From Monocercomonoides exilis PA203 (lineage: Eukaryota > Protista > Preaxostyla): DNA of 64,000 nt. The DNA is taken from assembly GCA_001643675.2 (NCBI GenBank), contig LSRY02000015.1, positions 1,302,001 to 1,366,000 of the forward strand. Reading direction: 5' to 3'. Shown here piece after piece: positions 15,655 to 52,400 of this stretch. The position numbers and the translations under genes are program-made. Position 1 is the first letter of the stretch; the number at the start of each line of letters is the position of its first letter. The notes below the pieces were generated by a model. The model saw nothing but the letters and a program-made list of their open reading frames with translations, was not told the DNA's origin and did not search any database.

Positions 15655-15686
<32 letters not shown>

Positions 15687-16506
15687 TTCCCTTTCTTCCC
15701 TTTCTTCCCTTTCTTCTTCTTCTATCAATCCCAATACTTCCTCCATCACCTCCTTCCCCCTCTCCTCCGCATCTGGTTCCCAAACACACTCCCTTCCTCT
15801 GTCTGCCTCTTCTCCTGCTGCTCTTCTTGCTCAATCCATCTCTCACTCACCTGCTCTGACAAAACAGAACAAAATCATTGCTCAATCTGTCGTTGGCTAC
15901 CCCTTTCCTCTCACTGCTGTCAATCAAAAGGCTGTTTTTGCTTTTTCATGTGGCTTTTCTCCAGCGTTTGCTGCTTCTGCTGCTTCTTCCTCTTCTTCCT
16001 CTTCCTCTTCTTCCTCTTCCACTGCCTTGCAGCCTCAGATGTCTGCTGTCCCTGTGAATGCTCCACTGTCTGTTCCTGTTACTTCTACTTCCTCTACTGT
16101 TCCTCCTCCTTCATCTTCCTCTTCCTCTTCTCCTTCTTCATCTCCATCTTCCTCCTCCTCCTCTTCTTCTTCTTCTTCATTCAACTTCATCAACCCACCC
16201 CTCTCCTCCACTCCTTACCCCCACCGCTACCAGAACTTCTATGCAGGCCCCTTCAACAACCCCAGCCCCACTGCCATGCTCCTCAATCAAAAGCCTCTTC
16301 AGCCTTCGATCGCTTCTTCTGGTGCCGTTTCTGTGAAAGCTGCTTCGGCTGCCTCTGCTGCCTCTGCTGCCTCTGCTGCCTCTGCTGCTTCAGCAGCGTC
16401 TGCTGCAACACATGCAAACTCAGTGGGTGGATTAGCTGTGATTGCTGGGTTGAATTCACAGATTGGTGGGGCTGTTGTTTCTTCTGCTCCTTCTTCTTCT
16501 TCTGCA

Positions 16507-16537
<31 letters not shown>

Positions 16538-19389
16538 CTTCTTCTTCAGTTCCTTCCTCCTCCTCTCCTTCCTCTTCATCATCATCATCTTCTTCTTCTT
16601 CTTCCCAGTCTTCCATCGCTTCCTTCTCTCCTTCTTCTGTCTCTGTCTCTGCCTCTGCCTCTGCCTCTCCTTCCTCCAATGGCTCAATCGTCTTCTTTGC
16701 TCAGAAGGCGAACGGAGCACCCACATACTACCATTCATCGTCAAAGACAACTGCCCTTCAATCTCATCCGTTCCCTGTCATAACCTCGGCTTCTCCTTCT
16801 TCTCCTTCTCCTTCTCCAGTTCCTGCTCCTGCTCCTGCTCCTGCTCCTTCAACACCTTCAACACCTTCTGCCTCTCCTGCTTCTTCTGCTCCTTCTTCTT
16901 CCACTTCTTCTTCTCCTCCTCCTCCTGCTGTTGTTGTAACAAATACATCATCTTCTTCCACCTCTGCTTCTTTGCCTGCTCCTTCCCCTTCTCCTTCTTC
17001 GGCATCTGCTTCTCCTTCACGACAAGCATCGTCATTTACTGCTCCTTCTTCCATATCAACTCCAATATCAACATCATCTTCTTCTTCTTCCGTTACTATT
17101 GCTGCTCCTTTTACTCCTCCTTCTTCTTCTCCTTCCACTTCTGTTTCAACTCCATCTTCAGTTCCTTCAACCCCTTCTTCTTTGTCTTCTTTGTCTTCTT
17201 TATCCACTTTATCTTCTCAGCCTCCTCCCATTATAAGCTCCCAGTCTCCCCAGATGCCTTCCTCTGCATTGGTCACTGTGAATGCCAATAACTTCACTAA
17301 AACGCCCCATGCTCTTTTTTTCAATGCTCTGCAGTCGCAAAATGCGGCTGCTCAGTTTCAAAACCAAAAAAATGAGTCTAATTTGATCGACGATGCAAAA
17401 AACTCGTCGTTAAAAAACGGTATTGACGCAAAGCAAATAGCTTTGGCGAATCAAAAAAAGAAAGCAGCACGTAAAAGAAAAAGTAAAAAAAATCGGGTAA
17501 CACCAAAAAAGCCAAGAAAGAAAAAACAAACAGATCCATTTGATTTTGAACGGCTGACACCAGAGCAAGAGGCCATGGTCAAATCGATGCATAATGTGGT
17601 GATAAAAAACAACTATCCAATGCAATTCTCAAAAGCAGATCAAGAAAAGGCCATCCAGCAAATGCTGTCAGCAACAGGCATACAGAAGCTGGCAGAGCAG
17701 TTTGGATTGGCCCAACAAAAAGATGAATTTCTTGCTCAATTGCCAATGTCTCAAATGGCTTTTCAAGGTGCTCCTGATGTTTCTTTTGTTTCATCTTCTT
17801 CCTCTCCTTATCCTCCATCATCTTCCATCATTTCAACAATTTCTTCCTCATCTTCTTTGCACCATCCACTTCATCCATCAACATTCACTTCAATGCAAGA
17901 ACCCCATCCATCTGATTCTTCTGCTTATCCAATTCACACTCCAATCCAGCTTCCTTCAACTTTTACTCCTCTTCCTTCATCATCTTCATCATCGTCATCG
18001 TCAATTTCATTGTCAATTGATGGCACTTCATCCGCTTCAGCATCTTCTTCTTCCATATCGACAATGAATCAACAAAGTTCTTCTTCTTCTTCTTTCACTT
18101 CAATTCCTCCTCTCCTTCCATCTCATTCTCTTCCGACATCACAACAGGAACATGAATGCGAATCAGATGACGATGTGATATTCATTCAGACCGTAGCAGA
18201 TACCAAGCAGATGACAACCAATGCTTCATCAAACGATGCAATGGCATCATTTCCACAGACACACAAGCAAACACCCCAAAATCCTCAGGAAAAGACGGAA
18301 AAGGCAGAAAAAACAGAAAAGACAGAAAAACAAGAAATACAGGAAATTTCTCCGGTGAAGAAGACGGAGAAATACATGGCAGAACAAGAAGCCAGAGATC
18401 TTGTCATATTCAGAGAAGCTGAACTGTCCAGTCACACAGACACTGCTGCCTCTTCTTCTTCTTCTTCTTCTTCTTCCACTCCTTCTTCAGCTCCTTCTGC
18501 TTCTTTATCTTCTGTTGCTTCTTCTCATTCTTCTTCTTCTGTTCCATCTTCTTCTTCTATTTCTTCTTCTTCTGTTCCTCCCAAAATGCCACCTCAATCG
18601 TTCCCAACCCCACTTTACCACTCACAGGCCACTCTCCATCCACCAAATGGAATGCAGGCATCAATCTATTTCTCACAAGGAGCATCATTCCCGAAAGTGA
18701 CAAACATTTTGCCTCAGGCTCCGTTAGCTGTGCAATCTATGCAATCTATGCAATCTATACAGACAATGCAAACAATACAAACAATACAACCTCTTCAGCC
18801 TTCTCAAATCTCCCACCCACAACTTCAGCAGCAGCATCAACCTCTTCAACCTCTTCAACATCCACATCAACAGCAACATCGTCAACAACAACCTGAAATT
18901 GCACCAAGTTCCATCCTTCCTGGCTCTTCCTCACAAAAAAGCTTTCCTCAGCCGCCTTCTTCTTCTTCTTCTTCTTCTTCTTCTCATCAGTCGAATGATG
19001 CTCTTTCTCATTCCTCTTCATCTGCATTATCATCTTCTTCTTCTATTTCTTTTCCTTTCCCTCAGAACATCAGTCATACCACTACTTCATCACCACATCC
19101 ACATCAATCTCTACCTCAGCCTCAACCTTCGCCTCAATCTCAACCTCAACCTCAACCTCAATCTCAACCTCAACCTCAGTCTTCTTTCAACAAACCATTG
19201 TCCAATACACAAGCTGATTCCTCTTCATCTGATGCTGTCTCCTCCACAAGCACCCAATCACAAGCATTTCCTCCAGTGACGACGTATTCTTCTGCTTCTT
19301 CTGCTTCTTCTGCTTCTTCTGCTGCTGCTTCGACTTCTTCTATTTCATCTTCTGCTGCTAATTCAAATTCTTCTTTAACTTCTGCTTTA

Positions 19390-19420
<31 letters not shown>

Positions 19421-19761
19421 CTTCTGTTCAATTGCATGTTTCTGCTCCAAATGCAGAGAATGATATTCCTTCTCAATCACAACTTTCTGATACCTCTGCT
19501 TCCTTAGCAACATCTTCGATGCCTTTATCTTCATCTTCATCTTCATCTTCATCTTCATCTTCTCCTTCTCCTTCTCCTTCTCCTTCTCCTCTTTCTTCTT
19601 CAACTGATGTTGATGCTGCCTCTGATGCTTCTATTGAAGTACTGCCTTCTTCCTCTTCTTCTTCTCAGACAAATACTGATTCAGCTTCTTCCTCCTCTTC
19701 CTCAATAGAATCAACCTCAAATTCTTCAGTTCAAGACTCTATTCAATTATCTTCATCTTAG
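13562..19761 (+). CDS. Giant Ser-rich disordered protein with an N-terminal degenerate RRM and basic NLS-like patches (terminal exon)
   Basis: A CAG acceptor at 13559-13561 precedes more than 2050 open codons. RTLLLLNVPCTLSLAAIRAFFDSQG...LLVTFAT...MRLCGCVVGIEAA fits the RRM pattern. It also has poly-Ser, acidic and K/R-rich tracts. Confidence 0.75.
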
Positions 19762-27051: not shown

Positions 27052-30000
27052 ATGTCTGAAGATCATTTATCAAATCCTGAGATTTTTTCAGAAGCTGGCT
27101 ATAAAAAGTCAACAACATCATCCAACTTACAAAATTCTCAATTTTTTATTTCAACTGAAATCAAAGCTCCAATAATTTCTTTACAATCACGCCCGAAAAA
27201 TCCGGTAGATGTTATCGCAGCAGTTGATTTTAGTTCAAGTATTATTTCATTTTTATTTCTTTTCAAGTTATTGATGATTAACTAATTAGGCATGGGAAAT
27301 GATTTTTTCTCAAAACGATAGTTTGTCAAATCTGTCTTTGATATCAAATGCTTCATAACAAATTCGTTTATAGCTCAAAGCTTCGTCAAGTGCTTATTTG
27401 TCTAGAAAAAATAATTTCTGTTCTTGGTGAAGATGACCGCTTTGGTATTGTGTTATTTTCAGGCAAACCTCGAAAGTTAATTGATTTAACATTTTTGGAT
27501 CCCAAACGAAAGGTTTTTACTTTGAATGATAAAAAATTTTGAATTTAGCTGATTCGTTTTTTTTTCTTTCATTGTTTTTTTGAAAAAAATTTAATATTTT
27601 AGGAAGTTGTTATTGATACAATTATGACATTTTCAGAACAACCACAAGGAAGTACGAATATTCTTGATGGCTTAAATGCTGCATTGGAATTACTTGAAAA
27701 TAGCGAAATGTTTGAAGCATTTTAATATTTTTGGATCTTCATTTTATTTTTCTTTTCAAATTTAATGCTTGACAACTTTATTTTCAAAAAAAACAATCAA
27801 ACAGCCCACCAAAAACAGGGGCAATGAGACATACATACATTTGGCTTTTTTCTGATGGAATGGATGATTCCGTGCACAGAGAAACGGAATTTGGAATGAA
27901 AAAGCAGTCATTACGGGTTAATGATGGAATAGATCTGATTCAAAATCGGATTATGAAAGTGCTCAATCAACATGAATGCTGCAGATATTTGTGCGAAGAC
28001 TGGACACGCAACATGAATTATGATGCTGACGATGCGGCACTATCAAATTCGCTATCTCCAAAGACATCACCAGCTGCTTTTTCTTCCAATGCATCGTCAT
28101 CAAGCTCATCATTTATGTATTCGTCTTGCACCCGAATCTTCACTTTTGGATTTGGCCAGGAACACGACGATGTTCTCTTATCTCAGCTGGCAATGATCGG
28201 AAGAGGGAACTACTTCTACATTGACACAGAAGGCTCCTTTGTGGAGGCTGTTGTGGAGAGTCTGGTCAAGAAGCAGTATTCTCTTCTGCTGGATGGCGTG
28301 TGTGAAGTGCAACTAGACAGCGGATGGAGCGTTGAGGCACTGATTAGCGGTGGTGGTGGAGGAGGCAGTGGAGGAGGAGGTGGTGGTGGAGGCAATTTCA
28401 ACGATGAAGAGCAAGGAATGAGAGGAGGAAGAGAGGCGAAAAGCGGAATGAATGCGTCGAGCGGAAAACGAAATGTGAGTGACTCAAGGAAAGTGCACAT
28501 CGGAGACATGTATCCTGGAATGAGCCAAAAGATCGTTTTGAAAGTGGAACCAGATGCTTCTTCTTCGTCGTCTTCGTCTGAAGACGAGAAAGCCGCAGAA
28601 AGCAAAGCAGATACTGTTCCTCCACTGTCTGGCTGTGTTTTGTTCTATTCGGTCAATCCACTTACAGCTCGCCCAAACAAAACACAAGTTCATCGCTTCA
28701 GTTATGACTTCAATGAAATGGACGAGATGGTATGCACTTCAGACTGTCCTGTTGGATGTTTTGCTGTTTTGAAAGCAGAATTTGATGCAATTTGGATTCT
28801 TTTCATATTTCAGAAAATTTGTTTTTAATATAAATATACTTCGCTTTTTTTCTTTTTCTTTTTTCTTTCTATTTTTTTAACTGATTATTTGTGCCTGCTC
28901 TTATTATAAATATATTTATTTATTTACATCAATTCGCTTCAGTCACCCAGCAGTTCTCTTTACAAGAGCATAGAGATCAGCGACGCCATCACACGACAGT
29001 TGGTTCAGCTGAAGCATTCGTCAAAGTCAAAGAATGCAGACGGCTCAGCTAACCAGAAGAACTTGCGCTCTGGTGCCTTTGCGATGGTCTCGAGAAGCAT
29101 GTTTGACGGGATGGATGCATTTGATCCACAAGCACTAAATGAGTTGGCTTCTTCTTCTTCAGCTTCATCTGCATCTGCCTCATCTTCTTCTTCAGGCGAC
29201 TCAACAAACCAACTTTCGCGTTCTTCTTCTTCTGCAAATTTTGCCGAGCCATCGCCCTGGAACAAGCCGGGTGCGTTGCTTATGTCAACTGCCAATCCTC
29301 TGAATGAGCTGATTCAGCAGACAACAGACGGAGTAGTGAAGCATCTCGACGAGAGAAGGGCAACTGGATTTGACCCCCGGTCCAAGCAGAAATTGAGCAT
29401 ATACTCACAGATCATTAACCAGCAGAGCGAGAAGAGAAAAGGTATGTTCTTGGAGAAAATAATGACAATAACAATAATAATTTCTATTTTAAAATGCACA
29501 TGCCGAATTATTTTGTTTTTTGATAACTTTTTTTGATAAAAAGATTATTCGAGATTTATTTTTATTCATTTTTGTTGCAAAATCACACACTCTTTTTTTT
29601 TAAATTTCTCTTCATCAAATTTTTCAGCCTTCACCACCGACCGTCCCCCTTCCACCATGCGTCGTCCCTCTCAGCCACCACCTCCTCTGTCTTCGTCTTA
29701 TCTGTCTTCTTCGCGCTACCACAGCCGCATGCAGCACAGACAGCATTCATCTGGTGCCTCAACGCGCTCCCGAAACTCGCCCATTCCAGGCGAGTCGCGG
29801 GCCGCTACGCCTCTTCTTCCGATCTCTCCGTCTCAGACGCTGGACGAGACAAACAGCTCGGTCTTTGGGATGAATCTGACAGGCACAGCGCAGTTTGACA
29901 AGGACAGGCTGCTTGTGACTCCGAGGGAGCAGCAGATGACACACGAGGAAATCGCCTCGGTGATTCTGGGCTCGATCAAAGACGAGCAGGAGACACCGCC

Positions 30001-33000
30001 GCTGATCAAGGACACAGTGAAAGCAACGACTGAGGTGATGTGCGAGAAGGCTGTGAAGGAGCTTCAGGAGGAGATGAAGGAGAAGTTGCAGGAGCAGCTG
30101 AAGGAGGAAATGAAGGAGGAGATGAAAGAAGAGATGAAGGAAGAATTGAAAGAAGAATTGAAAACTGAAATGAAAGCAGAATTGAGTGAGAAAATGAGAG
30201 AAGAGATTGAGCAGGAGATGAAGAAGAACTTGACTGATGCTTTGGAAGAGGAGCTGGCGAAGGAGAGGCAGAAAAGAGCAGCGATGGAGGAGGCATATGC
30301 AATGGAGACAATTAAAAAGCAAGTGGAAGAAGAAGAAGAGAGAGAGCAAGACGACCAGCTCAGAAAGATGATAACAGCAGATTGGATGAGCAGAATGAAG
30401 AAAGAATGCATCGATGCGATCAGTGAGATCGAACATGTGAAGGAAATTGTGCTGAAAAGAGCAGGGCTGAAGAGGAGAAAAGTAATGGCCTGTTCGCCTG
30501 GAGAGGCACAGCAAGACAACGACTCGTCTGATGGCAATCGAATGCGCGTGAAGGAAAGCAGAGAACGGAAGCAGGCACGCAGCTCTCATCGAAGCTCACC
30601 TGACAGCGAAAGTGATTACTTGTTTGTGGATGGGGATGAGTGGATGGATGATCCAGATTATGGAGAAAGCGATGAAGATAGCACAACCAGTGCGAGGAGG
30701 AGTGGAAGGAGCAAATCGGAAAATGAGGGTAAAAATAATGGAGAGACAAACGGAACGACAGAAACACCAGCAGATTCTGCTTCCGCTCCCAATTCAAAAA
30801 CAGCATCACAACCAACCTCTGAAGCTGTCACTGAAAAAGCTCATTCGCATCTTCCAATCATCATCACTTTTGCAATCATTTGCTTTGTTTTGTTCTTTCT
30901 GTCGCTGGTTTCCTTTATCGTTGCTGCACCCATGCTGTTCAGCGGTACTGTGGTTTCTGGAGGCAATGCATTTACTCTGAAGAAGCCAATCGAAATGGTT
31001 AATGGCGAGTCAAGTGTGATGCTGGCATACAGCGAAAATGGCGCTCAAACATCCGCTTCAAGTGAGAAATTTGCGACAACGACATTGTCAATACCTCCTC
31101 CTTCTTCATCTTCGTCTTCTTTATTGTCTTCTCTTTTACACGAATCACATTCAAATTCATCTGATTCTCTTTCCACTTCATTTCTATCAAAAATTTTGCA
31201 TTTCTTAAGAAATAAAAGAAACAGTACTTTTTCTACTGATTCTCATCTTCCTACTCAATTCACTTCATTACCAGAATCTGTTCCTTCAAGACACTCACCA
31301 CACTCACCACATTCACCATCACATCATTCATCCACCACACCTTCTTCTTCCTCTGCATTCTCTATCAGCACTTCAATTCTTACACCTTCTCTCATTGCAC
31401 CGCCAAACACCTCGTTAAACATCTACTCGCCGATCAACATGAATGGCTTCTCAATTGAGAATACTAATATTCTTTCCAGATTCAGTGGTGAGATGGAGCC
31501 AAACCAGACACTTCGCTGGAGCGTTGGAAGCGGAATCATCACGTCTGCCGAGCAATTATCGTTGGTAACTGAAAAGCAGAATACTACAAGTCATCAACTT
31601 TCATTCACACAAAACACAATTAAAGCTGAAGCTGTTAGCTTTGCGTCAAGCGAAGGAGATGAAATTACTCAGTCTCAAACGGAAGCAGTCACACTTGCAT
31701 CGCCACTGATTTTACAAGGAGAAAAGCAAACGAACGGATATTTCTCGAATAGCGGTGATATGAATGAAACAGCAAGAGCGAACATAAATTACGATAAATC
31801 CATTAAAAATACTACCAAAAGTCCAAATGCTCATTTTCTCAATGCACAAACAGTTTTGACTGTCAATGGAAATACAGAAATGAATGGCTACGTGAACATC
31901 AACGATGAAACAGATAGCGAGGGAAATATCTTAAATAAAGGAAATCTGAATGTGAAAGGAAGCGCAGACATTCGGGGTGATACGACTGTTGCGGGAGACA
32001 TCAACACATCAGGAAACATCAACGCATCAGGAAATATCAGCACGTTAGGAAACATTGAAGGTCAAAAGGATCTGAAAATTAAAGGAGCTGCGGAATTTCG
32101 AAGTATTAGCACGGAGCAATCACTCGTTTCAAATGGAGAGTGTTCATTCAAACAGAATGTGTTCGCTTACTCTGCAATAAATGTTGGATTTGAAAGTCAA
32201 AGCGCTTCTTCTGGGTTTGAAACGGTTATCTCATTAAAAGGCAAAGCCAGTGCTGGAGATAGTGATATATTGACTGTGAAGGGAGATGCAGGGTTTGAAG
32301 GGAGCATGGGGATTGGAGAAGGGCTGGAGGTGGGAGGAGACGTGGTTGTTGGGAACAGCAGCGCCGGAGGAGGAAGCACTCTATCAGTGAATGGGGGAGT
32401 GGAGATCAAGAAGAGTGGAACAACAGGAAATGGGAATGCTAATGGAGAAGTTAATGGGAATGAGAATTCTAATGGGGATGTTAATGGGGTGCTTTCAGTT
32501 GAAGGGAAGAGCACTTTGAGTGGAGGAGCAGAGATTGGAGACCAACTGAATGTGGGCGTTTATTCATCTTCGACGTCATCAAATTCTTTTCATTCAATAT
32601 TTTCTGTTGAAGCTGTAAATGCATCAGATAGTACTGGAGCTTCTTTTGTCAAAGGTGAGGCGCAGTTTTCTGGAACATTTAATATTGTCAATGTTGTTGA
32701 TGACGCAAACCCTGACAATATTTTGGAGAAAGCTCACCTAAACGTCGAAGGGCATACAACCCTTGGGGATTCTGTGGATGTCAGCGGGACTTTTAATGTT
32801 GCTGGAATGTCTCGTCTGGCAAATGGCCAATCGATTCCTTCCTTCTTCAAAGGTGTCGTCACAAGCAACCCGCAAATAATTGCTTGTGGAAACTTTTCAG
32901 AGGCCTCGTTTTTGATTCAAGGGCAGCGTGTTGAAGACAGCGTTTCGTATCCTTCTTTGACAGATGTAGCATTTCTTGTCGATGGCGGAGTGGCAAGACC

Positions 33001-33363
33001 TTGTATGCTAGTTTTTATTGAATAGCTAATTTCAAAGTTTTTTCTTTTGCTTTTTCTTATTTGAATCAATTTGTATATATTTCTTTTTTTGAAATATTTA
33101 AAGGCCAAAACAGAGCCAATGGAATTGTAATGATCTGCAATAATTCAGGTGTTGAATCCACGACCGAAGACAAATGCAATGTCACAGACAATACTGTGCT
33201 TTCAGTGAAAACAACTGCAGCCGAATCATTCCTGGCTCTGTCTGTTGCAGGATTCGGAGACAACCCGTTGGATATTGGCTTTGGAGAAGAGTGTGCAGCC
33301 ACTACATATAATTCCAATCGCAAACAAAACAAAAAGCAACAAAACAAGAACAGCCATAAATGA
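27052..33363 (+). CDS. vWA-spike protein A: N-terminal vWA (MIDAS), coiled coil, single TM helix, C-terminal beta-helix/fibre-like repeats; 8 exons, about 1800 aa
   Basis: All splice junctions keep frame. VDVIAAVDFSSSM (DxSxS), GSTNI, IWLFSDG, IFTFGFG; (KEEM)n coiled coil; TM IIITFAIICFVLFFLSLVSFIVAA (~30855-30930); 6-residue repeats GDTTVA-GDINTS-GNINAS-GNISTL-GNIEGQ. Last exon 33104-33363. Confidence 0.8.
32251..32571 (+). repeat. 321-bp perfect inverted repeat, copy 1 (coding, in vWA-spike gene A)
   Basis: By base-by-base reading it is identical to the reverse complement of 34734-35054. Encodes AGDSDILTVKGDAG...QLNVGVYSSS. Confidence 0.97.
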
Positions 33364-33913
33364 AGGATCAATATTATTAAGCATAACAAAAATGCAATTT
33401 TGAAGTTAAGCATTTCGTAAAAGATATTCGTTTTGGTTTAAAAGTTTTTTTTCCGTTTTTCGTTGATTAATTATGTTTTGTTTATTGAATTATTTCCTCA
33501 TATTTTTACGTTTACGTCTTATGAATAAAACTAAATGAAAAGATGATTTATTAACAAAAAGTATAAAATTACCACTGAAAAGAAAACATCTTCTTCAAAG
33601 AAAAAGGAGTGTTCAATGAGATTCCTGCAAAAAATATTTACTGATGTAATTATTAGAGATTGAAGATGATCGATAATTAACAACAAAACCACATGCGATG
33701 ACTTTCGCTTCAAAAAACTTAAAAAGTTACAACTATCATTAAAAACGAAAGATATTAATAACTTTCAAAACGAAGCAAAAAATAAATCTTTAAACAAACA
33801 AAAAAAAAAAGCCAGATGAAGTGTTTTGAACGTAATCATTTTTTGGTTCAATGATAAAAATTTGTGAAATGAAAAATCTGACAGAGGACATTGCTTTTTG
33901 AAAGCATTATGAA

Positions 33914-36900
33914 TTATGATCCATTTTGTGAATCCAAATGATTTGAGTCATCATAACTTGATGGAATAGGCTCTGTATCAATAATATCTTCCTCTTCGTT
34001 ACTATTTGAAGAAACCGTTAAAGGTTCAACATCTGCTCTAATATCACTGATTCCTTCTTGCTCTTCAGAAAATAGAGTTGTTTGGATGATTGTGGAGTGG
34101 TCAGCAGAGCACGTGAATGAGATTACACTCTCGTTGGACATAGTTGTGTTGAAGTTGACTGGTGGTGTTCCACTCTTCGATATAACAGGTTCTGCATCAG
34201 GATCATTAACAATGACAGCAGCAGATTCAGTCTGCGGTCCATTTACAGTATGAAACGTTGTTTTTGTCACGTGGAGTACATAAGTCCTTGGCAAATGCGA
34301 AATAGAAATCTTTACGCTTCCTTGTGAGAAATAATGTGAAAAGAAGTTGCTCAGCGACTGAAGACTGGAGAAATCAGACTTCACAGTAAATGGAACACCA
34401 AAGTGAACAGCACCAGTAAATCGAGATGTTCCTTTGACAATTAAATTTGCATCTTTGTCCTCTTCCTCTGTTGCAACAGCATTCAAAATTACGCTTGCGC
34501 CAAATGTATTCCCACTTCCATTAGGAATGTTAATTCCAACTGAAAGAGTGTCAAATACCTTTGTTCCTTGCCCAATCACTGCAATGCCATCAACGAACAA
34601 GTCTCCCGCAACAGAGTTTCCATCAGCATCTGTCCCATTTTTCAGACGTGCACAACCTTCCACAACAAGATTCGCACTGTCTTGTTGTGTAAAATCAGGC
34701 TTTGAATTCAGCTTGATAACAGGTTTGAATGTTGAAGATGAATAAACGCCCACATTCAGTTGGTCTCCAATCTCTGCTCCTCCACTCAAAGTGCTCTTCC
34801 CTTCAACTGAAAGCACCCCATTAACATCCCCATTAGAATTCTCATTCCCATTAACTTCTCCATTAGCATTCCCATTTCCTGTTGTTCCACTCTTCTTGAT
34901 CTCCACTCCCCCATTCACTGATAGAGTGCTTCCTCCTCCGGCGCTGCTGTTCCCAACAACCACGTCTCCTCCCACCTCCAGCCCTTCTCCAATCCCCATG
35001 CTCCCTTCAAACCCTGCATCTCCCTTCACAGTCAATATATCACTATCTCCAGCATTTGCTAAGTTTTGTGAATTCGACGAATTCTTCTCAATGTTATTTG
35101 AAAGGGTAGATCCTGTAGATTGAATTACAACATTCCCAACAAAAGAAGACATTCCATTTACAGAAAGAATGTTTCCGCTGGAAGCTCCACTGGATCCTCC
35201 GAGTGATGTTGTTCCTTTTACAATCAAATTTGCATTTGTGTTTGAGTTTGGATTTAGTTCAATCACAGAAGCAGAAGGCGATGCTCCATTGCCTGATGGC
35301 ACAGACACTTTCAGTGAATCAGTTACAGTAACTTCCTTGCTTATTGTAGCCTTTCCTTTCACAGTAAGGTCATTTCCAATTGTTGTATCGTTTACAATCT
35401 GCAAATCATTTGCTGAAAGCTTGTCGTTTATTGAAAGCTCATTAACAGCAGCTTTGCCATCAACTGTAAGGTCTTTGGTGATGTGAGCAGTTCCATTAAC
35501 CTTCATCGAAGCAGCAAGTTTTCCAGAAGCATCATTACTCACTTCTACAGACCAAGCAGAACTGAATGCTGGAGATTGCCCGTTTGTGTGCTGCCCAACA
35601 TTCAAAGAGTCCGATATCTTTGCTTCACCCAGCGCCGTTAATGAATTTGTGGTCAAAGGATCTTCAACAGTAAGTTGTTTGATAGTTGTTGCACCTTTCA
35701 GACTTGTCGTACCATTAACAGTTAAAGAACCGCCAACCAAAACGTTTCCGTTCACTTGCTCGTTTCCTTCAATAGTCACATCTGAATGTATTGTCGTAAC
35801 GCCTCCCACATCAACAGAAGAATGGAGAATCGCTTTGCCATCAACCGAAAACTGTCCTTCATTTGCATTTCCTTGCGAATCCGTGCTATTCATTACATGA
35901 GCGCTTCCTCTGACAACGAAGTCCTCTGCTTCCTCGTCTGAGTTGAGTGCCACAACCACGTTCCTCTTAGTTTCTGTGAGTGAGCCAACAAGCAATGGAC
36001 CGTTGACAAATGTGTTGCGGAAGTTCTGATTATCCGCTTCGAGATAAGATGCATGTATCTGAAAGGCTGTAAAGTTGTGCGCATAAACCATTCCATCCCC
36101 AACTTCAAACAGATGCTTCCTTTCAGAATCATCCGTAGTTGTAGCATGAAATTGTTCATTGCTTCTCTGTGTTGAAATATATTTATTTGGCTGATTACTC
36201 AAATCCCATTCTTTTCTCGGTGTTTTCGATGCTGTTTGCTTATACGAACCAGACTTTGTACAAGCAAGCGGAAGTAAAGCAGCTGACATGGCTTGCATAG
36301 AGACAGACGCAGCACTTGAGGATATATCGCCAACAGTCAAGCCAGAAGCACTTAGTATCTTTGAACTGCCAATCGGAGACAGAACAGAAGATATCGACAG
36401 CATCCCTCCTCCAAACAGCAACGCCCATCCAACAACCACAGCGCTAATAACAACTACGCTAAGCACAATCCACAAGATCACACACAGTCCTGTTCCAAGC
36501 GACGACTGCCTCACATTCTTGTCCCACCATCGGAAGAAACATGTTGGCTGCTTTTCCGAGTCCTTATTCAACTGTGCGAATGGAGATGTGGCAGAGTCAC
36601 CAGAGGGAACGGGAGTTGTCTGAGCTGCCGAAGAATCCATTTCTCCGTTACGATCGGCAGCGGAAGGTGTAGGCATTGAAGGAAACTCCTGATCTGGATC
36701 AGCCTCAGACGGCTCAAAAAGCGAGTCGTCTTCACCCTCCATTGAGCCATTACATTCAGAGTCGTTTTCCTCGTTTGCATCATCATCGAGATCGCGTGGC
36801 AGAGGTGCTCCTTTCAAACGTTGCATTGCACGTGGTTGAGGAGCGAATTGTGGCTCAGTGTCGAAATGCTCTATTGTTTCGTCGTCTCCAAATCCATTGC

Positions 36901-39900
36901 CGCCATTCACCTCGCTTCCTTCATTACTTTCAGTCTCGTCGATCAACTCAGCATGCAACCTCCCGTTTTCTGTGCGGCTTTCAGGCGAGTTTCCGTTCAC
37001 TTCTTGCTCTTGCAATTGTCTTGATTTGGATGCTTCATCTTTATTTTGCTTGTTTCTGTTGTTTCTTGCACTCTTTGTTCTGCGTGACGACTTTGGCGCT
37101 TTCTTCTTTTGATTCTGACTTGTTTGAAAAGACCTTCCTTCCATTTCAATGCTTCTTTCCATCTCATCAGCGCCATTCGCTTCTTCCTTTCGCTCCTCTT
37201 CCAATCCTTCAAAGCGAAGAAGTGGATCATTCACCCCGAATGCTTCAGGGCCCAGCGAAAGCTGCGCTTCCAAAAGCATCTTCCTCTCGTTTGCGCCTAT
37301 TCCTTCGTTCTGCTTCATCAGCACATCTGTCAGCTCAGCATTATTTCCTATTGCTGGAGAGCCAACGTTCACAGCAGTGCAAGAGGATTCAGTTGTTTGG
37401 CCTTCTCCTTCTTGTCCCTTTGAACCATTTGCATCTCCATTTGTATCTTCCTTGGAGTCTTCCTTCGCATTCATCATCTTTTGCTCTCTGCGTTGCCTTG
37501 CAAGTCTGCGCTTCTGCTGAAGCGATGATGGAATCAGCGTCGGTGTTGACAATAGCTGCCCTTCCATTTTCTCTCTTTGAATCTCTGAAGCCTTCTTTCT
37601 AGCAGCATCATCATCATCTTTCTCTTCTCTTCCTTCATTGTGATTCACTTCCTCGTCCTCGTTCTCGTTTTCAGGCATTTCTGGGTTCTCCTTCGTGCTG
37701 TGCTCTGAGTTCTCATGCAGCATCGTCACTGATCCCTCGTCTGCATTGCCTTCTTCGTTGTCTTCATCTGCTTCATTAGCCTCCTGTTGTGTGCTTTCGT
37801 ATTCAGAGGCAACAGGCGTGGAGTGGACGGTGTTGGAGGAAGGAGAAGAGATTGGCGTGTCAGAACTAACAGTGCGTGAGGTGAGTGGTGGTGTGGCTGT
37901 GGGCTGAGGAGTTGCAGAAGCAGGCGAAATGGCTGCCTTTTGCATCTCAGATGAGGAAGAGGAAGAGGAAGAAGCGGAAGCAGAGGAGGAAGCGGAGGAA
38001 GAAGAAGAGGCAGAAGAAGATGTGGGGTAATCTTGTGAAATGTTTGCGTGAGATGAAATGAAATAGTCAGCAGATGAAGGAGAAGCGAGTAGAGGGGCAT
38101 TTGACATATACAGAAGCGGGCCATCCAACTCTCCACAAAGATCTTCCATTTCAATTGCTCTGCTAAGTCCATCGTCAAAATCGGAAGAAGAAGAAGATGC
38201 AGAAGCAGAAGCTGATGAAGGATGATTCAGATTCTGTTTGTTATTCAGGTTTCCGTTTCTTTTGCTTCTTTCATTCCGAAACTCTGCAAATGTCTTTGGC
38301 TTTTTGTGAACAGACACCACTTCATTGCCATCAGCTTCATTCTCTTTGTTTCCATTCCCTGTTCCTTTCCTCGCTCTTCTCTGGTTCCCTCTATTTCTTC
38401 CACTCCCCCCTTTTATTCCATTCCTTCCTTCTCCTCCTTTCCCTCTTTCTCTCCGAACACCTTCCATCTCCTCCATCAGCAGTGAAGGCGACGTCTGCGC
38501 CTCTCTGTCATCCAGCCCAACTGCTCCAACTTTCGCATACCGCAGCCGCAGCCTCCTTCTCTTCTCTCTCCGCTTTTTCGCCTCTTCCCGCTCGTTCCGC
38601 AGGCGCTGGCTGTCTTCCTCGTCTCTCATCAGCAGCAGCTCGTGCATTTCCTGCCTCTCCCTCTCCCTCTCTTCAAACGCCGCCTTCTCCTCCTCAAACT
38701 CCTCCCACCGCTTCTCCTCTTCCTCTTTCATCTGCTGCTTCACTGACGCAAACACCTGCCTCCTGCTGTTGTCAATCGACCCCATCAGCCTCTCCTTCAG
38801 CTCGCATTCTTCGCGATGCATCGCTGCCTGCTCAGCCAGCTCATTCAGCAACTCCTCTTCTTCTGCCCGGCGCTGCTGAAGCCTTTGCGTGTTGTTCAGC
38901 AGGCGCTGCCTGTATTGAGCGTCGTGCTGCTGCTGAAGATGAGTTGTTGCTAAGGAAAGAGCATATGATAGAAAGGGGGCTGAGGAAGGGGAGAAAGAAG
39001 AGTCGATGTTTGCCTGGGAAGCGAGGAGGGATTCTGGTGAAGAAGAAGAAGAGGAGGAGGATGAAGGAGAAGAAGAAATAGCTGCAACTGAAGAGAATGT
39101 GGACAAAAATGGTGCGTCTGTTGAAGAAGAAGAAGAAGAAGCAGAAGAAGAAGCAGAATATGGTTGCGGAGCTTGCTCATCATTTTGTGTGTTTTCCTGT
39201 TGTTCTTGTGATGCTCCTTCATTGCTTTCGTTGCTTATTCCTTCAAATTCCTGCTCATAATCCAGCGGCATTGCTGTCGGCCTTTCTGAATCTGACGTCA
39301 AACTGTCTCCTCTTTCGCCATGGCCACTTCCTGTTTGCTGAGCTTTTCTGCTTTTCCCTCTTCTTTCACTCTGTGTTCTCATCGAGTCAGAAAACGAACT
39401 CTTCACTCGCTTTCTCTTGTCTTTTTCCTTTCGAGTCGATTCCAACTTGCTTTGTGACATTTTATTTCTTTTCCTTCTTTCACTCTTGTTCTCTCTTTCC
39501 ATCTCAGCCACTCTTTCCCTGCTCCTCTTCAGCTCCTCCTCTTTCTCCCTTATCTTCCACAGCGCCCTCTCAATCTCCCTCTCAGCCTTCGCTCCCCTCT
39601 GCCTCAGCTCCTCTAGCTCTTCCACCACCCCCGCACACTTCGCCACAAACGACGCCAGCAGCGCCTGCCCAGCCTCTTCCTCCCACTGCCCCATCTGCTG
39701 TGCATACCCCTCTCTCATCTCCCTCTGCAGATCGTCCAGTGCTGCCCTGTGTCTCAGCGCTTGCTCCCCTGCAAACGACAGGAGCACCCCACGCGCCTGC
39801 CGCTCCACCGCCCGCACCACAGCCTCAGAAGAGCCATCGCTGGCAGCAAGACTTCGACTGCGCAGGGGAGAAAAGGGGCGGAATTCAGGAATGTCTGCCA

Positions 39901-42041
39901 GCGCCTCCTTGTTGAATGTGCGCGCCATCCGGCTGCCGATGCTGCGGGTGCTCAGCTTCAGCCCTTTTGTGCCGAAGTTGGTGGAGCGAGATTTGATCAT
40001 GGAGACTGAGGAAAGGGAGAGGAGGGAAGGGTTGTGGAGTGTGGGAGAAGGGAGTGGGGGAAGGATGTTAATAAGTGAATGAGTGAGTGAGTGATTGAGT
40101 ATATAATTGATTGATTGATTGAAAATATGATTGAGAAAAATTCCAGTTAGGATATTAAAGAATAAGAAAAGGCATTTAAAAAAAGAAAAGAAAAGAAAAG
40201 AAAAGAAAAGATAGGATTCACACATCCGCCCAGCATTTCAGCTCTCTGAGACGAAAAAGCAGTGGAATTGTCTTTTTGCCCTGCTTTCAGGTCTTTGAAT
40301 TCGTTCATCACACGAGTCGTAAGCTGATACTCAGCCAGAAGATCGCTAGGCAGCATCTGTTTGTGAAAGGAATAGAAGAAGAAGAATTATAACAATGAAA
40401 GAAAATGAGGCATTGATTGACACAGATTCAAAAATATTCAATTAAAAAACATTGGAAAGATTATCACAACACGCAAGCATTCAAGTGTATTTCAAAAAAC
40501 AATCAAAATCAATTTTTTTATTTAAAAGAAAGAAAGAAAAGAAGCACATCCAGTTCAACAATCAGAAAGAAAGAAAGAAAGATAGAAAGAAAAGACCGAG
40601 TTTAAAATAAGAAATCACATTCACACCTCGTAGTCATTCAGCTTCACGAGCATCACCTCCGTCTGGTCCTGGAGCACCCCGCCTTCAGTGAGGTTGACGT
40701 AGCTGACTTTGACTGTGACCACCGCGTCCTTCGCGCCGAGGCTCACGTCCCACATCACATTCGCCAGCATCTCGTGGTACACATCGCCCAAATCAGCCAC
40801 AGCCACCGACTCCACATCCGGCGGCCCGATCTGCCGCACCACCTCCGCACCGTCGCTCACCTCGATCTTCGCCCGCACGTTCTGCGCAACAAGCGTCAGC
40901 TTCCGGTTCAGGCAGTCGGCGAAGTAGTGGATGAACTCCTGCTCCTGCTTCGTCTGCTCCGTCGAGCGCACGTAGTAGTATGTGCCGTGCCCGTACTTCG
41001 CAAACTTGCTCATGACCGTGTCGTCGTTTTGGGACCCGAAGCCAAACGTGTTGATGGAAAACCCGCCGACAATGCGCTCGTCGTAGGAGTGAATGAGCTC
41101 TTTGATTTTTCTGTCCAGCGTTTCCTCCGAAAGCGACCCAATCGGCCGCTTGAGGCTGGGATCCCAGTTCTCCCGCACAATAAAATCCATTCCGTCTGAA
41201 AACATCCATATGGATGCTGAGCGTCCCTCTGCATTTTCATTTCTTTTATAATTTCAACAAAGTTGATAATTTTCATCAAATGCACATTTCAAAAATAAAT
41301 ATACAAAATAAAATAAAATAAAATAATCATCAACAATAATTAGTGTTCGAAAAGTTAAAAAAAAAAAATTGCGCAAACCTTTCTGGTGATGCCAGTTCGT
41401 CGAGAGCTGCTTGCAGCGCTTTCATTAGATTTGTTCCTCCATCTGGATGCGATATAAACTTTGATAATGTCGCAGAGACGCTCCACTTAAAAAAAGACAT
41501 TTCAAGTCAAGCATAATGGACGACAACATACCCTGTTTAAAGAATCCATTGGAGCTAAACCAAAAAGTTTTTTTGGTTCAAGGGCAAATAGATAAACCTT
41601 TTTTTGGAAAAAAAATAGTTTTGAAAGATAATACCCATATGAGTTTATAATACAAACTGAAAAACGATCTTGTTCCCCAAGGTAAGTTATTAAATGTTGA
41701 AAGCAATTCATGACTTGGGCTAATTTGTTTTTTCCTTGAAGTGAAAAACCGCCAGTCATTGATTTTGATGTGTCAATCATGCAAATTACGTCCATAGGCG
41801 CTCTGCGTTCTCCAATATCTTCAATAATCGGAGCCTTCAAGGTCAATGCGACTGTCCTCATATTTTTCTTTGGATATTGAAATATTATAAAAATATCAAT
41901 TTGAGTTTTTTAATGATGTCATACATTGTATTTTCCGGTTATCCCCGAAGAAAGCAATAAGTTAAATAATGAACCTTGTGATGCATATTCTTCTGAAGAA
42001 TTTTCTCCTTCTGGAAGACTATTTTCATCTTTTTCATCCAT
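33914..42041 (-). CDS. vWA-spike protein B: N-terminal vWA (MIDAS), coiled coils, single TM helix, long beta-helix/fibre-like repeats; 7 exons, about 2450 aa
   Basis: MDEKDENS...|...RAPMDVICMIDTSKSM...DRFS|...|GGTNL...|...SIWMFSDG...INTFGFG...GHGTYYYV...|MLPSDLL...|FSMIKSRS..., entering the 2103-aa ORF. TM LCVILWIVLSVVVISAVVVGWALLF (~36415-36490). Repeats SSVDVG-GVTTIH-SDVTIE-GNEQVN-GNVLVG-GSLTVN. Confidence 0.8.
34734..35054 (-). repeat. 321-bp perfect inverted repeat, copy 2 (coding, in vWA-spike gene B)
   Basis: Reverse complement of 32251-32571; same peptide and same reading frame in gene B. Confidence 0.97.
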
Positions 42042-42241
42042 CAATAAAACTATAATAAAGGGTATGTTCATCAATCACTGCATTTGATTGTACTCATTTG
42101 TCTTTAAATTATGTGCATTTCATTTGTACAAAGCATGAATAAAAAAAATGAAAATAATATTTATCTTTATTAACTATTTCTTTATGAAGAGCAATACAGA
42201 AAGAATTCAGCTTAAAATGAAATGAAAGAAATGCTTATTAC

Positions 42242-43043
42242 TTACGCAGTGAATGATTCAGCCAAAGGTGAAGAAACTCCAACAGAAGCCGTACTTGCTG
42301 ATTTCAACATTTCGATCCGTTGTTGTTTTTTTGAGAGCATAAGCTTATCGCTTCTTAAAAATGCAAAATGAATTAATACAGGTGCAAAAGTAACCCAAGT
42401 GTATCTCCATTTAATATCTTTAACCAATGTGATAAGTGCAACAATCCAATAGATAAAAACACTTAATGATGCGACCAATGATACTTTTTTTGCGAGAGAG
42501 CATTGAGAAGGTGCAAGAACATCTGATTGAACAAATAGTCCAGAAGCACAGACTGAAAGAGTTGATATTCCAAAAGCAACAGCAGAAAGAGGAACATCAA
42601 AATTGCTTGGAATAATAAGGTTGTTTCCTTCCGTCAATCCAAAAAGGAACATTGTAAAAAATAAACCACCAAATATGAATGCTAGAACTCCGTCCAGAAG
42701 CTGTTTCAATTTTATTAAATCGTTTCAAAGATTCAAAAAAAATGTTCACGCAAAAACGAAAAGAAAGTATTTTCAAAGGAGTTGTTAAATATTTGTGATT
42801 AAAAACAAAAAAAATTTATTTATTCCAATTTTCTTTGAAGATAAACAATGTGCATACGCGAAATTTACTCATGTCGTCTTTGGTTTTTTTTGGTGGTTCA
42901 GTTGGAACAGTAGCTCTTGGGGTTTCTAAACAAACAGAATTCAGCAAAACTATTATGATTAAAGTCACACCATTGTGTTGAACAGCACTGACTTCAACGT
43001 CGTCTTTTGGCTTTTGCCGAGAAATAACAGATGAATCTTCCAT
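42242..43043 (-). CDS. Small multi-pass membrane protein (about 4 TM), 3 exons, unknown function
   Basis: MEDSSVISRQ...|ETPRATV...MSKFR|LLDGVLAFIFGGLFFTMFLFGL..., followed by further hydrophobic segments. Confidence 0.65.
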
Positions 43044-49492: not shown

Positions 49493-52400
49493 ATGAAAGC
49501 TATCCATATTATTTCTGCATATTTTCTTCTTATAACTCTCGATTGCATTTGCGAAGGAACTAAGCTATCCGCTGTTACTGAAACACAAACTTTGATATTT
49601 GATGTTTATAATTCAACCTTAAGGTTACAAAAGCTATCCTTTTTGACAGTGAAAAATGAAAGCATAGCATTCTTCAAAAAAAATTTATTTTCTGAACTTG
49701 TAAGTTGCATATTCATTCCTTCTTCATTGGGTATTAACAGTCCATTTTTTACTTTTGATGGAACCTCACATTTTTACAATTTTACAATCTTAACAACGCA
49801 AACTCAAACTGTTTACACGCCTATTATAAGTGAACATTGCTTAAATTCTAAAGCAAGGTTTTTTACAGGAAGTACAGTGTCGTTTTTTGATTCGAATTTT
49901 TCTTCGTTAACAATTGCATCTCCATGCTCCTTGCTTTCTTGTTATGAAGTTAATTCGATCTATATATTACACTGTGAATTTAGTAATATTAGTTCTTCTT
50001 CGAATCATTATGCAAATGAAAATTCTTCTTGCAATATTTCAATGAGCAGTTGCATTTTTTCTGCTGTTGAAAATCCATTTTATCACACAATTATTGATTC
50101 ACGATTTTCGGAACAATTAAGCGCTTCAAATTCATCTTTCGAACGATGTGCTATACGATATCAAAACCGCACGTACTTGACAGGAGGAACTAAATCATTT
50201 CTTGATATCACCTTTACATTTAACGGAGGCTATACCCAAGGAGGGGCTATCTGTGCAAAAGGCAGTTCTGATGTTGCAATTAATAATTGCTTGTTTGATA
50301 AATGTAAGGTTACCGGAAATGAAAATAATACTGGAAGAGGTGGAGCTTTATTTTGCGAAAATGGAAAATGTGTTGTTTCTGACTCAATTTTTACAAATTG
50401 CACAGGGAGCTATGCAGATGGAGCTGTTTCTTTTTGGTTTGGAACGAAGCGCGTTCTCCATAAATGCCGAATTGTTGATTGTAGCGGTCCACAGCACTTT
50501 GGAGGAATGAATTTCGAACAAGCCCCTGAAAATGAATCTCAAATATCTGAATGCGAATATTCGAAATGCTGGTGTAGCATCGATGGCGATTCTTGTAGAG
50601 GATGTGGAGGCGCCTTGGGAATAGTTAATCCACCTCCACATCTTTTCATTACTAGCATAAAATTCCAAAACAACAGGGCTGTGAGACATGGAGGCGCAAT
50701 CATGTGCTTTTTGGCTTTATCAGGTTCTTCATTTCGATGTCGTTTCCTTTTTTTCAGTAACAATTCAGGGCGGAGTCAAGGAGGAAGTGATATTTACACA
50801 GATCATAATTTTGCTGGAAAGTTGGATTCTACTCAATTTGAAACATGCTATTCGTTTTCTGCGGCACCTCGCTTTGTCTACTGCAACAGCGATGGAAGTT
50901 ATCCAGATGCTGCTAACAAGCCAGATTGGCTGCCGACTCCGAGTTTTCCAAACATTTACGTGAAAAATGGAGGACATGATACAAATGATTGCGGTAATTC
51001 CACAGGCAACAAGGAGTGTCTCACATTAAAATTTTCAATAACACGCTGGACTCCAATATTTAACCAGAAGATTATTGTGAATGGAGGAACTTACACTGAA
51101 ACCTCACTGGACATCTCAGACAGAGTGATAGTGGCAGACTCCCAAACGTCAATTCCAAAGATTGTCTCAAAAATTAGCTCAGGAACATTTTGCACGATCA
51201 CAAACGGATCATTTTCCGCTTCGAATTTAATTTTTGTGCATAACTCGTCAACTTCTTCAAATGCGATAATGTTTTCGATAAGCGAAGAAGATGGAGTACT
51301 GAAGCTGATCAAGAGCAAAGTGACGGCCGAAAGCGGACAAGGCACTTCCTTTTCTAAGTCTCTTTTTGTGATTAACGATGGACATTTAATCCTCGACCAG
51401 ACAACTATCACGGCAATAAAAGCTTCGAAGCCTGTTTTATCTCTTATTTTTCCGAGGGAATTTACTACAACGCAGTCAGTGTTTTCTCAAATCAGCCGAA
51501 CAAATGGAAATGGAAGTGTATTGGAAGCAACACTGGAGGCAGGACAAATATTACATTTAGCAAATTTTTCTCTTTCTGAATGCAGCTGCAGTGAAGGAAA
51601 TGGAGGAGGAATGTGGGTTTATATGAAAGCTGGCTCATCTTTCAGACTGGGAAATGCTACTGGCGCATCTGTTTCTGGCAGAGAGGCCAACGCGAATGAG
51701 ATCATGGGCTTCACATCGTGTGCAGCACACGGCGGATCGGAGCCGAAATATGGATGTGGAGGAGGAGTGTTTCTGTATCTGGAGAATGGAGCGACAGACT
51801 TTATATTCAAAGATGTGTCGTTCAGTTCATGCACTGCAGAAAGTGGGAAGAATATATTTGTGAGCGCTAATAGCCTTTCCACAGTTATAACCAATACAAC
51901 TATTGCCTTCGGGCCTGACCTTTCCAGCAATGATGGGCTTCGTGGATATGAAAGATTATCATTAGGAGCTACATTCGCCATTCCTTTACTGATTTACCTA
52001 AAGCCATTTGCAAGTCCTGCTTGTGTTGGTGGCTCATTCAAAGCAGATATCAATCGGTGTGGATTTCCTTCGTTCCCATGCTCAACAATTAACTTTGCAG
52101 TAACTACGCACTTTTATGCAACCAAGGTGGAGATCTTGCTTGTTTCTCCATTCAGTTTCAATGCAGAACTGAAAATGGAAACGAATGAATGGGACATTTC
52201 AACAACAGCACAGGGAACAAAATTTGAAGTCAGTTTAGCTTCACCAACGGCACAAGCAGGATTTATTGAATCATCCATTTTATCGACAATAACCAACATC
52301 ACATTTTCTGTTCCTCAGACGCTCACAAACAAAGATGCGCTTTTGCTTTGTTCTTCAGATACTTTGAAAGTTATTAACTGCGGATTAACAGCAGCTACAA

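Follow-up and report, generated by a model that had tools for sequence, protein, structure and literature searches.

Two convergent genes of Monocercomonoides exilis that may couple an inner vWA domain to an outer beta-repeat fiber

Within a 64,000-nucleotide (nt) stretch of the protist Monocercomonoides exilis PA203 (GCA_001643675.2, contig LSRY02000015.1, positions 1,302,001 to 1,366,000 of the forward strand; hereafter, the window), the interval from 27052 to 42041 is occupied by two convergent genes. Gene 1 runs from 27052 to 33363 on the forward strand and gene 2 from 42041 to 33914 on the reverse strand. In each, a series of exons with the motifs of a von Willebrand factor A (vWA) domain is followed by one long exon with a predicted transmembrane (TM) segment and a region of short repeats of beta-strand type. 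An initial annotation of the sequence had read each locus as a single gene whose product carries the vWA domain in the cytosol and the repeats outside of the cell. The window is eukaryotic. GC content is 40-57% in exons and 16-35% in the T-rich introns and spacers, transfer RNA genes are absent, and a gene for the centriole protein SAS-6 is located nearby.

Results

Gene structure and duplication

Gene models were rebuilt from the DNA and then checked by script for splice sites, stops, and reading frame (Table 1). The model of gene 1 has 8 exons and 1840 codons, and that of gene 2 has 6 exons and 2466 codons. Every intron of both genes is bounded by GT and AG, there are no internal stops in the exons, and both coding totals are divisible by three. 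As initially described, four introns correspond between the genes in position and phase: after KRK in gene 1 and LNR in gene 2 (phase 0), within SE/I and PE/R (phase 2), after DEM and DYE (phase 0), and before the long exon (phase 1). The exon between the first two of these introns has the same length, 107 nt, in both genes. Together with the identity of 26% between the paralogs in the largest vWA exon, the shared introns point to an old duplication. No further paralogs of either gene were found in the window.

Three details of the models deserve comment. First, the mini-exon of gene 1, which is bounded by introns of 51 and 53 nt, splits the DxSxS loop of the metal ion-dependent adhesion site (MIDAS) in a stretch that is unbroken in gene 2, and its inclusion brings the loop to the length found in gene 2. 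Second, exon 2 of gene 2 contains a T-rich insert of 18 residues that gene 1 lacks. This insert may be an unrecognized or noncanonical intron, or a homopolymer error; no in-frame GT-AG pair that would remove it was found, and it was kept in the model. Third, as read from the sequence, one more exon is probable at the 3' end of gene 1, overlooked when the end of the gene was placed by open reading frame (ORF) at 33025. Further upstream exons are unlikely for either gene: the 5 kb before gene 1 have a GC content of 24-25%, and 200 nt separate the start of gene 2 from the end of another gene. That upstream neighbor is a 155-amino-acid (aa) ORF with several hydrophobic segments, and its stop overlaps a perfect GTAAGT donor. 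Its use as a spliced donor of a signal sequence for gene 2 was considered and rejected, as the phases are incompatible.

Table 1. Features of the two genes and neighboring reading frames, in positions of the window (long-exon residues are counted from the start of that exon)
Feature	Position	Strand	Description
Gene 1, exon 1	27052..27238	+	Start codon; without signal peptide; ends within MIDAS DxSxS (DFSS/S), phase 1
Gene 1, mini-exon (31 nt)	27290..27320	+	Completes DFSSSM; GT-AG sites and phases checked
Gene 1, exon 3	27374..27512	+	vWA helix 1 and strand 2; ends KRK, phase 0; Pfam VWA 16.8 bits, profile 16-57
Gene 1, exon 4 (107 nt)	27603..27709	+	MIDAS Thr (QGSTN); ends SE/I, phase 2
Gene 1, exon 5	27805..28729	+	FSDG (MIDAS Asp), TFGFG, end of vWA; ends DEM, phase 0; Pfam VWA_3 15.7 bits, profile 124-153/155
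Gene 1, exon 6 (linker)	28943..29441	+	Donor GTATGT, phase 1
Gene 1, long exon (1125 codons)	29628..33002	+	Disordered, E/K/R-rich helix, TM, stalk, beta repeats
Gene 1, TM segment	30848..30949	+	Long-exon residues ~407-440
Gene 1, beta repeats	31847..32854	+	Long-exon residues ~740-1075
Gene 1, copy of identical block (321 nt)	32251..32571	+	In frame, 107 aa, inside repeat region
Gene 1, probable last exon	33104..33363	+	4 Cys and basic tail; donor T/GTATGC at 33002/33003, phase 1
Gene 2, exon 1	41925..42041	-	Start codon; acidic N terminus; without signal peptide
Gene 2, exon 2	41532..41867	-	MIDAS DTSKSM, vWA strands 1-2; ends LNR, phase 0; Pfam VWA_2 15.6 bits, profile 1-42
Gene 2, T-rich insert of exon 2	41575..41640	-	18 residues
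Gene 2, exon 3 (107 nt)	41379..41485	-	GGTN; ends PE/R, phase 2
Gene 2, exon 4	40627..41242	-	FSDG, TFGFG, end of vWA, post-vWA beta region; ends DYE, phase 0; Pfam VWA_3 18.2 bits, profile 115-154/155
Gene 2, exon 5 (linker, 44 residues)	40224..40356	-	Donor GTGTGAAT, same as exon 4 donor; phase 1
Gene 2, long exon (2029 codons and stop)	33914..40005	-	Preceded by ~70-nt pyrimidine tract, then CAG
Gene 2, TM segment	36395..36496	-	Long-exon residues ~1170-1203
Gene 2, beta repeats	34334..35926	-	Long-exon residues ~1360-1890
Gene 2, inverted copy of identical block (321 nt)	34734..35054	-	In frame, inside repeat region
155-aa ORF	42242..42709	-	Several hydrophobic segments
Exon-like ORF	6387..6959	-	YDWR and HSMGG motifs
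2055-aa ORF	13594..19761	+	31% Ser
2903-aa ORF	49493..58204	+	N-terminal signal peptide
SAS-6 gene (locus L002)	58877..60190	+	N-terminal domain, E 8e-9

The vWA module

Both genes carry the MIDAS-type vWA motifs that had been claimed for them, and they do so in the same order: DFSSS in gene 1 and DTSKS in gene 2, followed by QGSTN and DGGTN, LFSDG and MFSDG, and then TFGFG. Neither gene lacks any of the five MIDAS positions. When Pfam scans were made exon by exon, a model of the vWA clan was the best match for four separate exons, and these matches fell in the correct order along the profile. Given the complete motifs and the ordered best matches, a vWA domain is the clear reading for both proteins, although formally the matches are below threshold. 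Behind the domain lies a beta-rich region that is common to both paralogs at low identity and that, in exon 5 of gene 1, contains poly-Gly and poly-Ser inserts. A distant relative of the module was found in a metagenome contig (locus L001; VSKX01097941.1, 1367-3214) with an intron-bearing eukaryotic vWA gene. Its block from TFGFG to YYI is 34% identical to gene 2, and the contig is too short beyond the vWA domain for further comparison.

The middle region and membrane segment

A hydropathy scan of every exon revealed no hydrophobic segment in the N-terminal exons of either gene, in keeping with the initial view that both proteins lack a signal peptide. The same scan identified exactly one TM-like segment per protein, as had been reported, with 30-40 hydrophobic residues inside the long exon. 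Disordered sequence had been noted between the vWA domain and this segment, and it is present as S/P-rich and acidic stretches of the long exons. Specifically, the long exon of gene 1 begins with an S/P-rich disordered stretch (residues 1-100), continues with an E/K/R-rich helix (~130-290) and an acidic disordered stretch (290-400), and has an S/T/P stalk (450-600) behind the TM segment. In gene 2, residues 1-1165 consist of helices rich in E/K/R and of long disordered stretches that are acidic and Ser-rich. The helical parts reach up to 62% E+K+R per 50 residues. Their assignment as coiled coil is weakened by the 4-residue EEMK pattern of the helical region of gene 1, which a single charged helix fits at least equally well. 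The stalk that follows the TM segment contains up to 60% S+T+P.

The repeat region and its relatives

After the TM segment, hydrophobic residues and Gly autocorrelate at lags 6 and 12 (z scores of 3.6-5.5), and the motif [LIVFM]x[LIVFM]xG is enriched about 3.4-fold (19 and 13 occurrences in the two proteins versus 5.6 and 3.8 in shuffled sequences). The repeats are shorter than the 600-800 aa first attributed to them. Their cores span only ~340 aa in gene 1 and ~530 aa in gene 2, within ectodomains of ~770-820 aa that otherwise consist of the Ser/Thr/Pro-rich stalk and a nonrepeat tail, which is acidic in gene 2.

For gene 2, a HMMER search with the C-terminal 700 residues against 1.84 billion representatives returned 41 matches, the best with an E value of 2.3e-14 and ~33% identity; none was below 1e-30, and no copy of the query itself was among them. 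The relatives share the consensus LxVxGxxxxxxxLxVxG. According to Pfam, 27 of the 41 match Bactofilin, 8 Peptidase_S74, 6 LbH_EIF2B, 5 YadA_anchor, and 3 Peptidase_G2. Two of the best relatives (L003, 2685-5549; L004, 10001-15136) are found on contigs that look like giant viruses, given the dense packing of their genes and the Mito_carr, SET, NUDIX, and DUF2828 genes among them, and one relative is from the green alga Tetraselmis striata. In addition, NCBIfam and PHROGs returned only weak matches of a generic beta-helix or tail-fiber type for the exon pieces (MinC, LpxA, P2 gpV, and a tail-fiber PHROG, the last with an E value of 0.0011), and a word-index search with the C-terminal region of gene 1 (candidate lengths of 622-1979 aa) gave no match, even to the protein itself. 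Based on the Pfam families of the 41 relatives and the genomic contexts of two of them, the shaft repeats appear to belong, through weak kinship, to a loose class with fibers of phages and giant viruses, trimeric autotransporters, and bactofilin-like solenoids. Their description as phage-spike-like is thus loosely borne out in that the relatives are fiber proteins of viral and bacterial type; it does not amount to demonstrated homology, and a search with the low-confidence fold leans in the same direction nonsignificantly.

An identical inverted block shared by the genes

The repeat regions of the two genes contain an inverted repeat that is perfect over 321 nt and 99% identical over 330 nt, with sharp edges. 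The GC content of this block is 0.49, compared to 0.39-0.43 in all four flanks, and outside of it the DNA of the paralogs is unalignable. No further copies were found within the window. Because the block is identical, the two genes have not evolved independently. The view of the pair as ancient paralogs therefore stands with respect to the old duplication, and it fails with respect to independent evolution.

Neighboring genes

Several other reading frames in the window are of interest in their own right. The 2055-aa ORF is 31% Ser, and the ORFs around it are 14-31% Ser. A GC skew of -0.30 to -0.48, measured in sliding windows over 14-20 kb, coincides with this ORF and most likely results from its Ser-codon bias. 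On the other side of the gene pair, the 2903-aa ORF opens with a clear signal peptide, contains Cys residues and NxS/T sites in large number, and closes with a Lys-rich tail. No Pfam family matches it, and it is a candidate type I surface protein beside the fiber genes. The SAS-6 gene has a single word-index relative, 45% identical, in the Logan assembly of SRR13490892; the source lineage seems to be poorly sampled. Finally, the exon-like ORF on the reverse strand carries two motifs, YDWR and HSMGG, that we take to be typical of LCAT-type lipases or acyltransferases.

Discussion

Our analysis favors, with a probability of roughly 0.55, a reading in which each locus is one gene for a single-pass type II membrane protein with an inner vWA domain and an outer beta-repeat fiber. 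The sequence itself shows the gene structure, the motifs, the one TM segment, the periodicity and weak kinship of the repeats, and the identical block; we infer the single transcript, the topology, the fold, the oligomeric state, and the function of the proteins. What the initial annotation had observed was mostly right, and its interpretation is plausible but depends on a putative transcript structure and a putative fold.

The reading begins with the joining of the vWA exons to the long exon. Judged from the sequence, such a single transcript is probable at each locus. The donors that it would use fit the local type, with GTATGT and GTATGC recurring in gene 1 and GTGTGAAT used twice in gene 2. 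Furthermore, a long pyrimidine tract and CAG stand immediately before both long exons, from which an upstream exon is to be expected. The vWA exons have also been kept in the same orientation, ~190-210 nt from the long exon, in both of the diverged copies.

The alternative that survives best, although we regard it as unlikely, is that each locus consists of two adjacent genes that were duplicated together. The first would encode a soluble cytosolic protein with the vWA domain and the post-vWA region (~700 aa in gene 1 and ~430 aa in gene 2), and the second, a single-exon gene, would encode a type II membrane fiber that starts at an ATG inside the long exon. Such an ATG is present in frame just past both acceptors, 10 codons into the long exon of gene 1 (29657) and 2 codons into that of gene 2 (40000), which counts against a single transcript. 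In each gene, the unspliced frame upstream runs for 31 codons to a stop. Head-to-tail neighbors in the window can be separated by as little as ~200 nt (42041 to 42242), and the vWA-Vwaint proteins that have been described are self-contained and intracellular. Likewise, Pfam found a VWA domain in none of the 41 proteins related to the repeats. Yet, two adjacent genes would not be expected to be separated by a proposed intron with canonical donors typical of the family (GTATGT in gene 1, GTGTGAAT in gene 2), a strong pyrimidine tract, and CAG, or to retain its phase, 1, in both diverged copies. In addition, the spacer between them would measure only 120-150 nt and is AT-rich like the confirmed introns.

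If each locus is one gene, then the type II topology (N-in/C-out) that had been proposed is the only reasonable orientation for the polypeptide, since 1000-1600 residues and no signal peptide stand ahead of the TM segment, an arrangement that by what is known of signal anchors would leave the N terminus inside. Charges around the TM segment of gene 2 obey the positive-inside rule for this orientation, with 4 K/R before and 1 after it.

Type II topology cannot separate the plasma membrane from internal membranes. An architecture of the same kind could thus place the fiber in an internal lumen, such as that of the endoplasmic reticulum, the nuclear envelope, or a secretory or extrusive organelle, where it would act as a tether or belong to the organelle content, with its anchor in the cytosol. 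The extrusome role that was initially suggested would fall under this alternative. We consider such a location rather improbable: no observation speaks for it, the repeats are most closely related to exposed fibers of viruses and bacteria, and an S/T/P stalk is typical of surface proteins. The reverse topology, in which the vWA domain would be outside and the repeats would form a bactofilin-like cytoskeletal tail of a TRAP- or integrin-like adhesin, draws on the neutral to slightly reversed charges around the TM segment of gene 1 and on the cytoplasmic location of bactofilin repeats in bacteria, but it is highly improbable because both genes lack a signal peptide and leave no room for upstream exons, the positive-inside bias of gene 2 fits N-in, and by established membrane-protein biogenesis a highly charged stretch of 1000-1600 residues is not expected to be translocated when no signal peptide leads it.

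A number of results, besides the in-frame ATG codons, weigh against the type II fiber reading. With respect to the vWA domain, the matches per exon are below the Pfam thresholds (15.6-18.2 bits versus cut-offs of 23.8-27). Sequence searches of the PDB with the vWA exon pieces and with a two-sequence profile returned only noise from poly-Gly linkers, and a word-index search with the vWA half-exon of gene 2 (candidate lengths of 113-359 aa) gave no match. Neither Vwaint (PF14624) nor Vint (PF14623) was matched by Pfam at an E value of ≤1 in exons 5-7 of gene 1 or exons 4 and 6 of gene 2. With respect to topology, the charges around the TM segment of gene 1 (1 K/R before and 2 after) do not favor N-in. 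The Ser-rich proteome of the window makes the stalk weak evidence for an extracellular location; neighboring ORFs are also Ser-rich, so that such stretches in this genome are uninformative about where a protein resides. With respect to the fiber, the C-terminal regions of both long exons had no Pfam match, including to Bactofilin (PF04519), and there was no match to Peptidase_S74 or Peptidase_G2 at either C terminus. Moreover, the beta-helix fold that had been claimed found no clear support. Predicted by AlphaFold from a single sequence, the repeats of gene 1 reached a predicted local distance difference test (pLDDT) score of 36, which is unusable; a prediction made with a 44-row alignment of the matched segments reached 60, with short strands. 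Foldseek found nothing in the PDB with an E value below 1 (the bactofilin 6ria was at 8.5) and nothing in BFVD at ≤0.001. The nonsignificant entries at the top of the BFVD list, from Pyramimonas orientalis virus, tail fibers, S74 proteins, and a chlorovirus glycoprotein repeat, agree with kinship to viral fibers and suggest a trend only.

How do these proteins compare to others that have been described? Protists and fungi have intracellular vWA-Vwaint(-Vint) proteins, which together with plant RING-vWA proteins such as At5g60710 constitute a described eukaryotic family whose members lack a signal peptide and presumably act inside of the cell (Buerglin 2008, PMC2362128). Like theirs, the vWA domain of the window proteins stands at the N terminus with no signal peptide before it, and a conserved non-vWA region comes next. 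Unlike them, the window proteins lack the Pfam Vwaint and Vint/Hint domains, and the members of the family have neither a TM segment nor a fiber. In its placement, the vWA module appears to resemble that of the vWA-Vwaint family, to which we do not assign it. Also comparable are the adhesins TRAP/MIC2 and the I-domain integrins, single-pass membrane proteins that carry a vWA domain of MIDAS type. Their vWA domain, however, is extracellular behind a signal peptide, and their cytosolic tail is short, the opposite of what is predicted here.

The repeats invite a different set of comparisons. Their consensus and periodicity match the 12-residue LxVxG shaft repeats of phage and giant-virus fibers, which make up the bulk of the 41 relatives. 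Many of these fiber proteins end in a Peptidase_S74 or G2 intramolecular chaperone. In contrast, the window proteins lack an S74/G2 chaperone, are anchored by a TM segment upstream, and are encoded by cellular, intron-bearing genes, and the likeness rests on the repeats (best E value of 2e-14, about 33% identity). The hexad periodicity would suit a triangular beta-solenoid like that of Bactofilin, the family most often matched by the relatives, whereas the window proteins themselves do not match PF04519 and bactofilins are small and cytoplasmic. Finally, YadA-type trimeric autotransporters are likewise long surface fibers of short beta repeats on a stalk, and YadA anchors occur among the relatives. 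Pfam found no YadA-like membrane anchor in the window proteins, which lack ESPR and an outer-membrane barrel as well; their principle of anchoring is another one.

Under the type II fiber reading, the cytosolic part of each protein would consist of the N-terminal vWA domain with its complete MIDAS, the beta-rich post-vWA region, and a long E/K/R-rich spacer of helical and disordered sequence. A single TM helix would cross the membrane, and the Ser/Thr/Pro-rich stalk, the repeat shaft, and a divergent distal tail would stand outside of the cell or in the lumen of an organelle. The shaft, built from repeats of 6 or 12 residues with the pattern hydrophobic-x-hydrophobic-x-Gly, could keep the distal tail off the membrane, in the manner of a surface fiber or adhesin. 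On the inner side, the MIDAS site may contact a partner in the cortex or cytoskeleton by binding one of its acidic residues via a metal ion, and this binding would anchor the fiber from inside. The two genes would descend from an old duplication, and the identical block would reflect continuing exchange of sequence between them.

The plain reading of the identical block is recent gene conversion. Alternatively, the block could be a maintained recombination site of an invertible cassette that swaps distal tips between two shafts. In this convergent arrangement, with a copy of the block close before the distal tail of either gene, a recombination event between the two copies would turn around the segment 32572-34733 and thereby exchange the tails in frame. 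Three features of the block fit recurrent exchange rather than a single transfer between DNA that is otherwise unalignable: its edges are sharp, its GC content is raised (0.49 versus ~0.41), and its 321 nt just exceed the usual minimum for efficient homologous recombination. We nevertheless view a maintained cassette as doubtful. The G-segment switch of phage Mu and the C-segment switch of P1 offer a parallel, in that fiber genes with convergent ends and inverted repeats undergo inversions that swap distal tips in frame. Those switches use sites of ~34 bp and a dedicated serine invertase, whereas the block described here is 321 nt of coding sequence that would depend on general homologous recombination, and one orientation is observed.

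Taken singly, the parts of these proteins are familiar: a vWA domain with a MIDAS, a charged helix, a signal anchor, a stalk of mucin-like type, and a shaft of beta repeats. Their combination, with its predicted orientation, appears to have no counterpart among the relatives that we found, although long proteins that have just the vWA module in common with them could have escaped the searches. For the fiber, the 1.84 billion representatives include no close relative. If each locus is indeed one gene, then the surface fiber would be reversed relative to known vWA adhesins, with the shaft outside and a vWA domain for metal-dependent docking inside, and protists may couple an external fiber to the cell cortex in a way that has not been described. 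The distant relatives of the repeats, most of which are giant-virus-like and phage-like, prompt one to ask whether a virus or a bacterium was the source of the shaft. Furthermore, the identical inverted block provides an example, open to direct testing, of concerted evolution or perhaps of tip switching within a pair of eukaryotic surface proteins. Should tip switching be true, it would represent a eukaryotic, recombinase-independent analog of the tail-fiber switch in the G segment of phage Mu.

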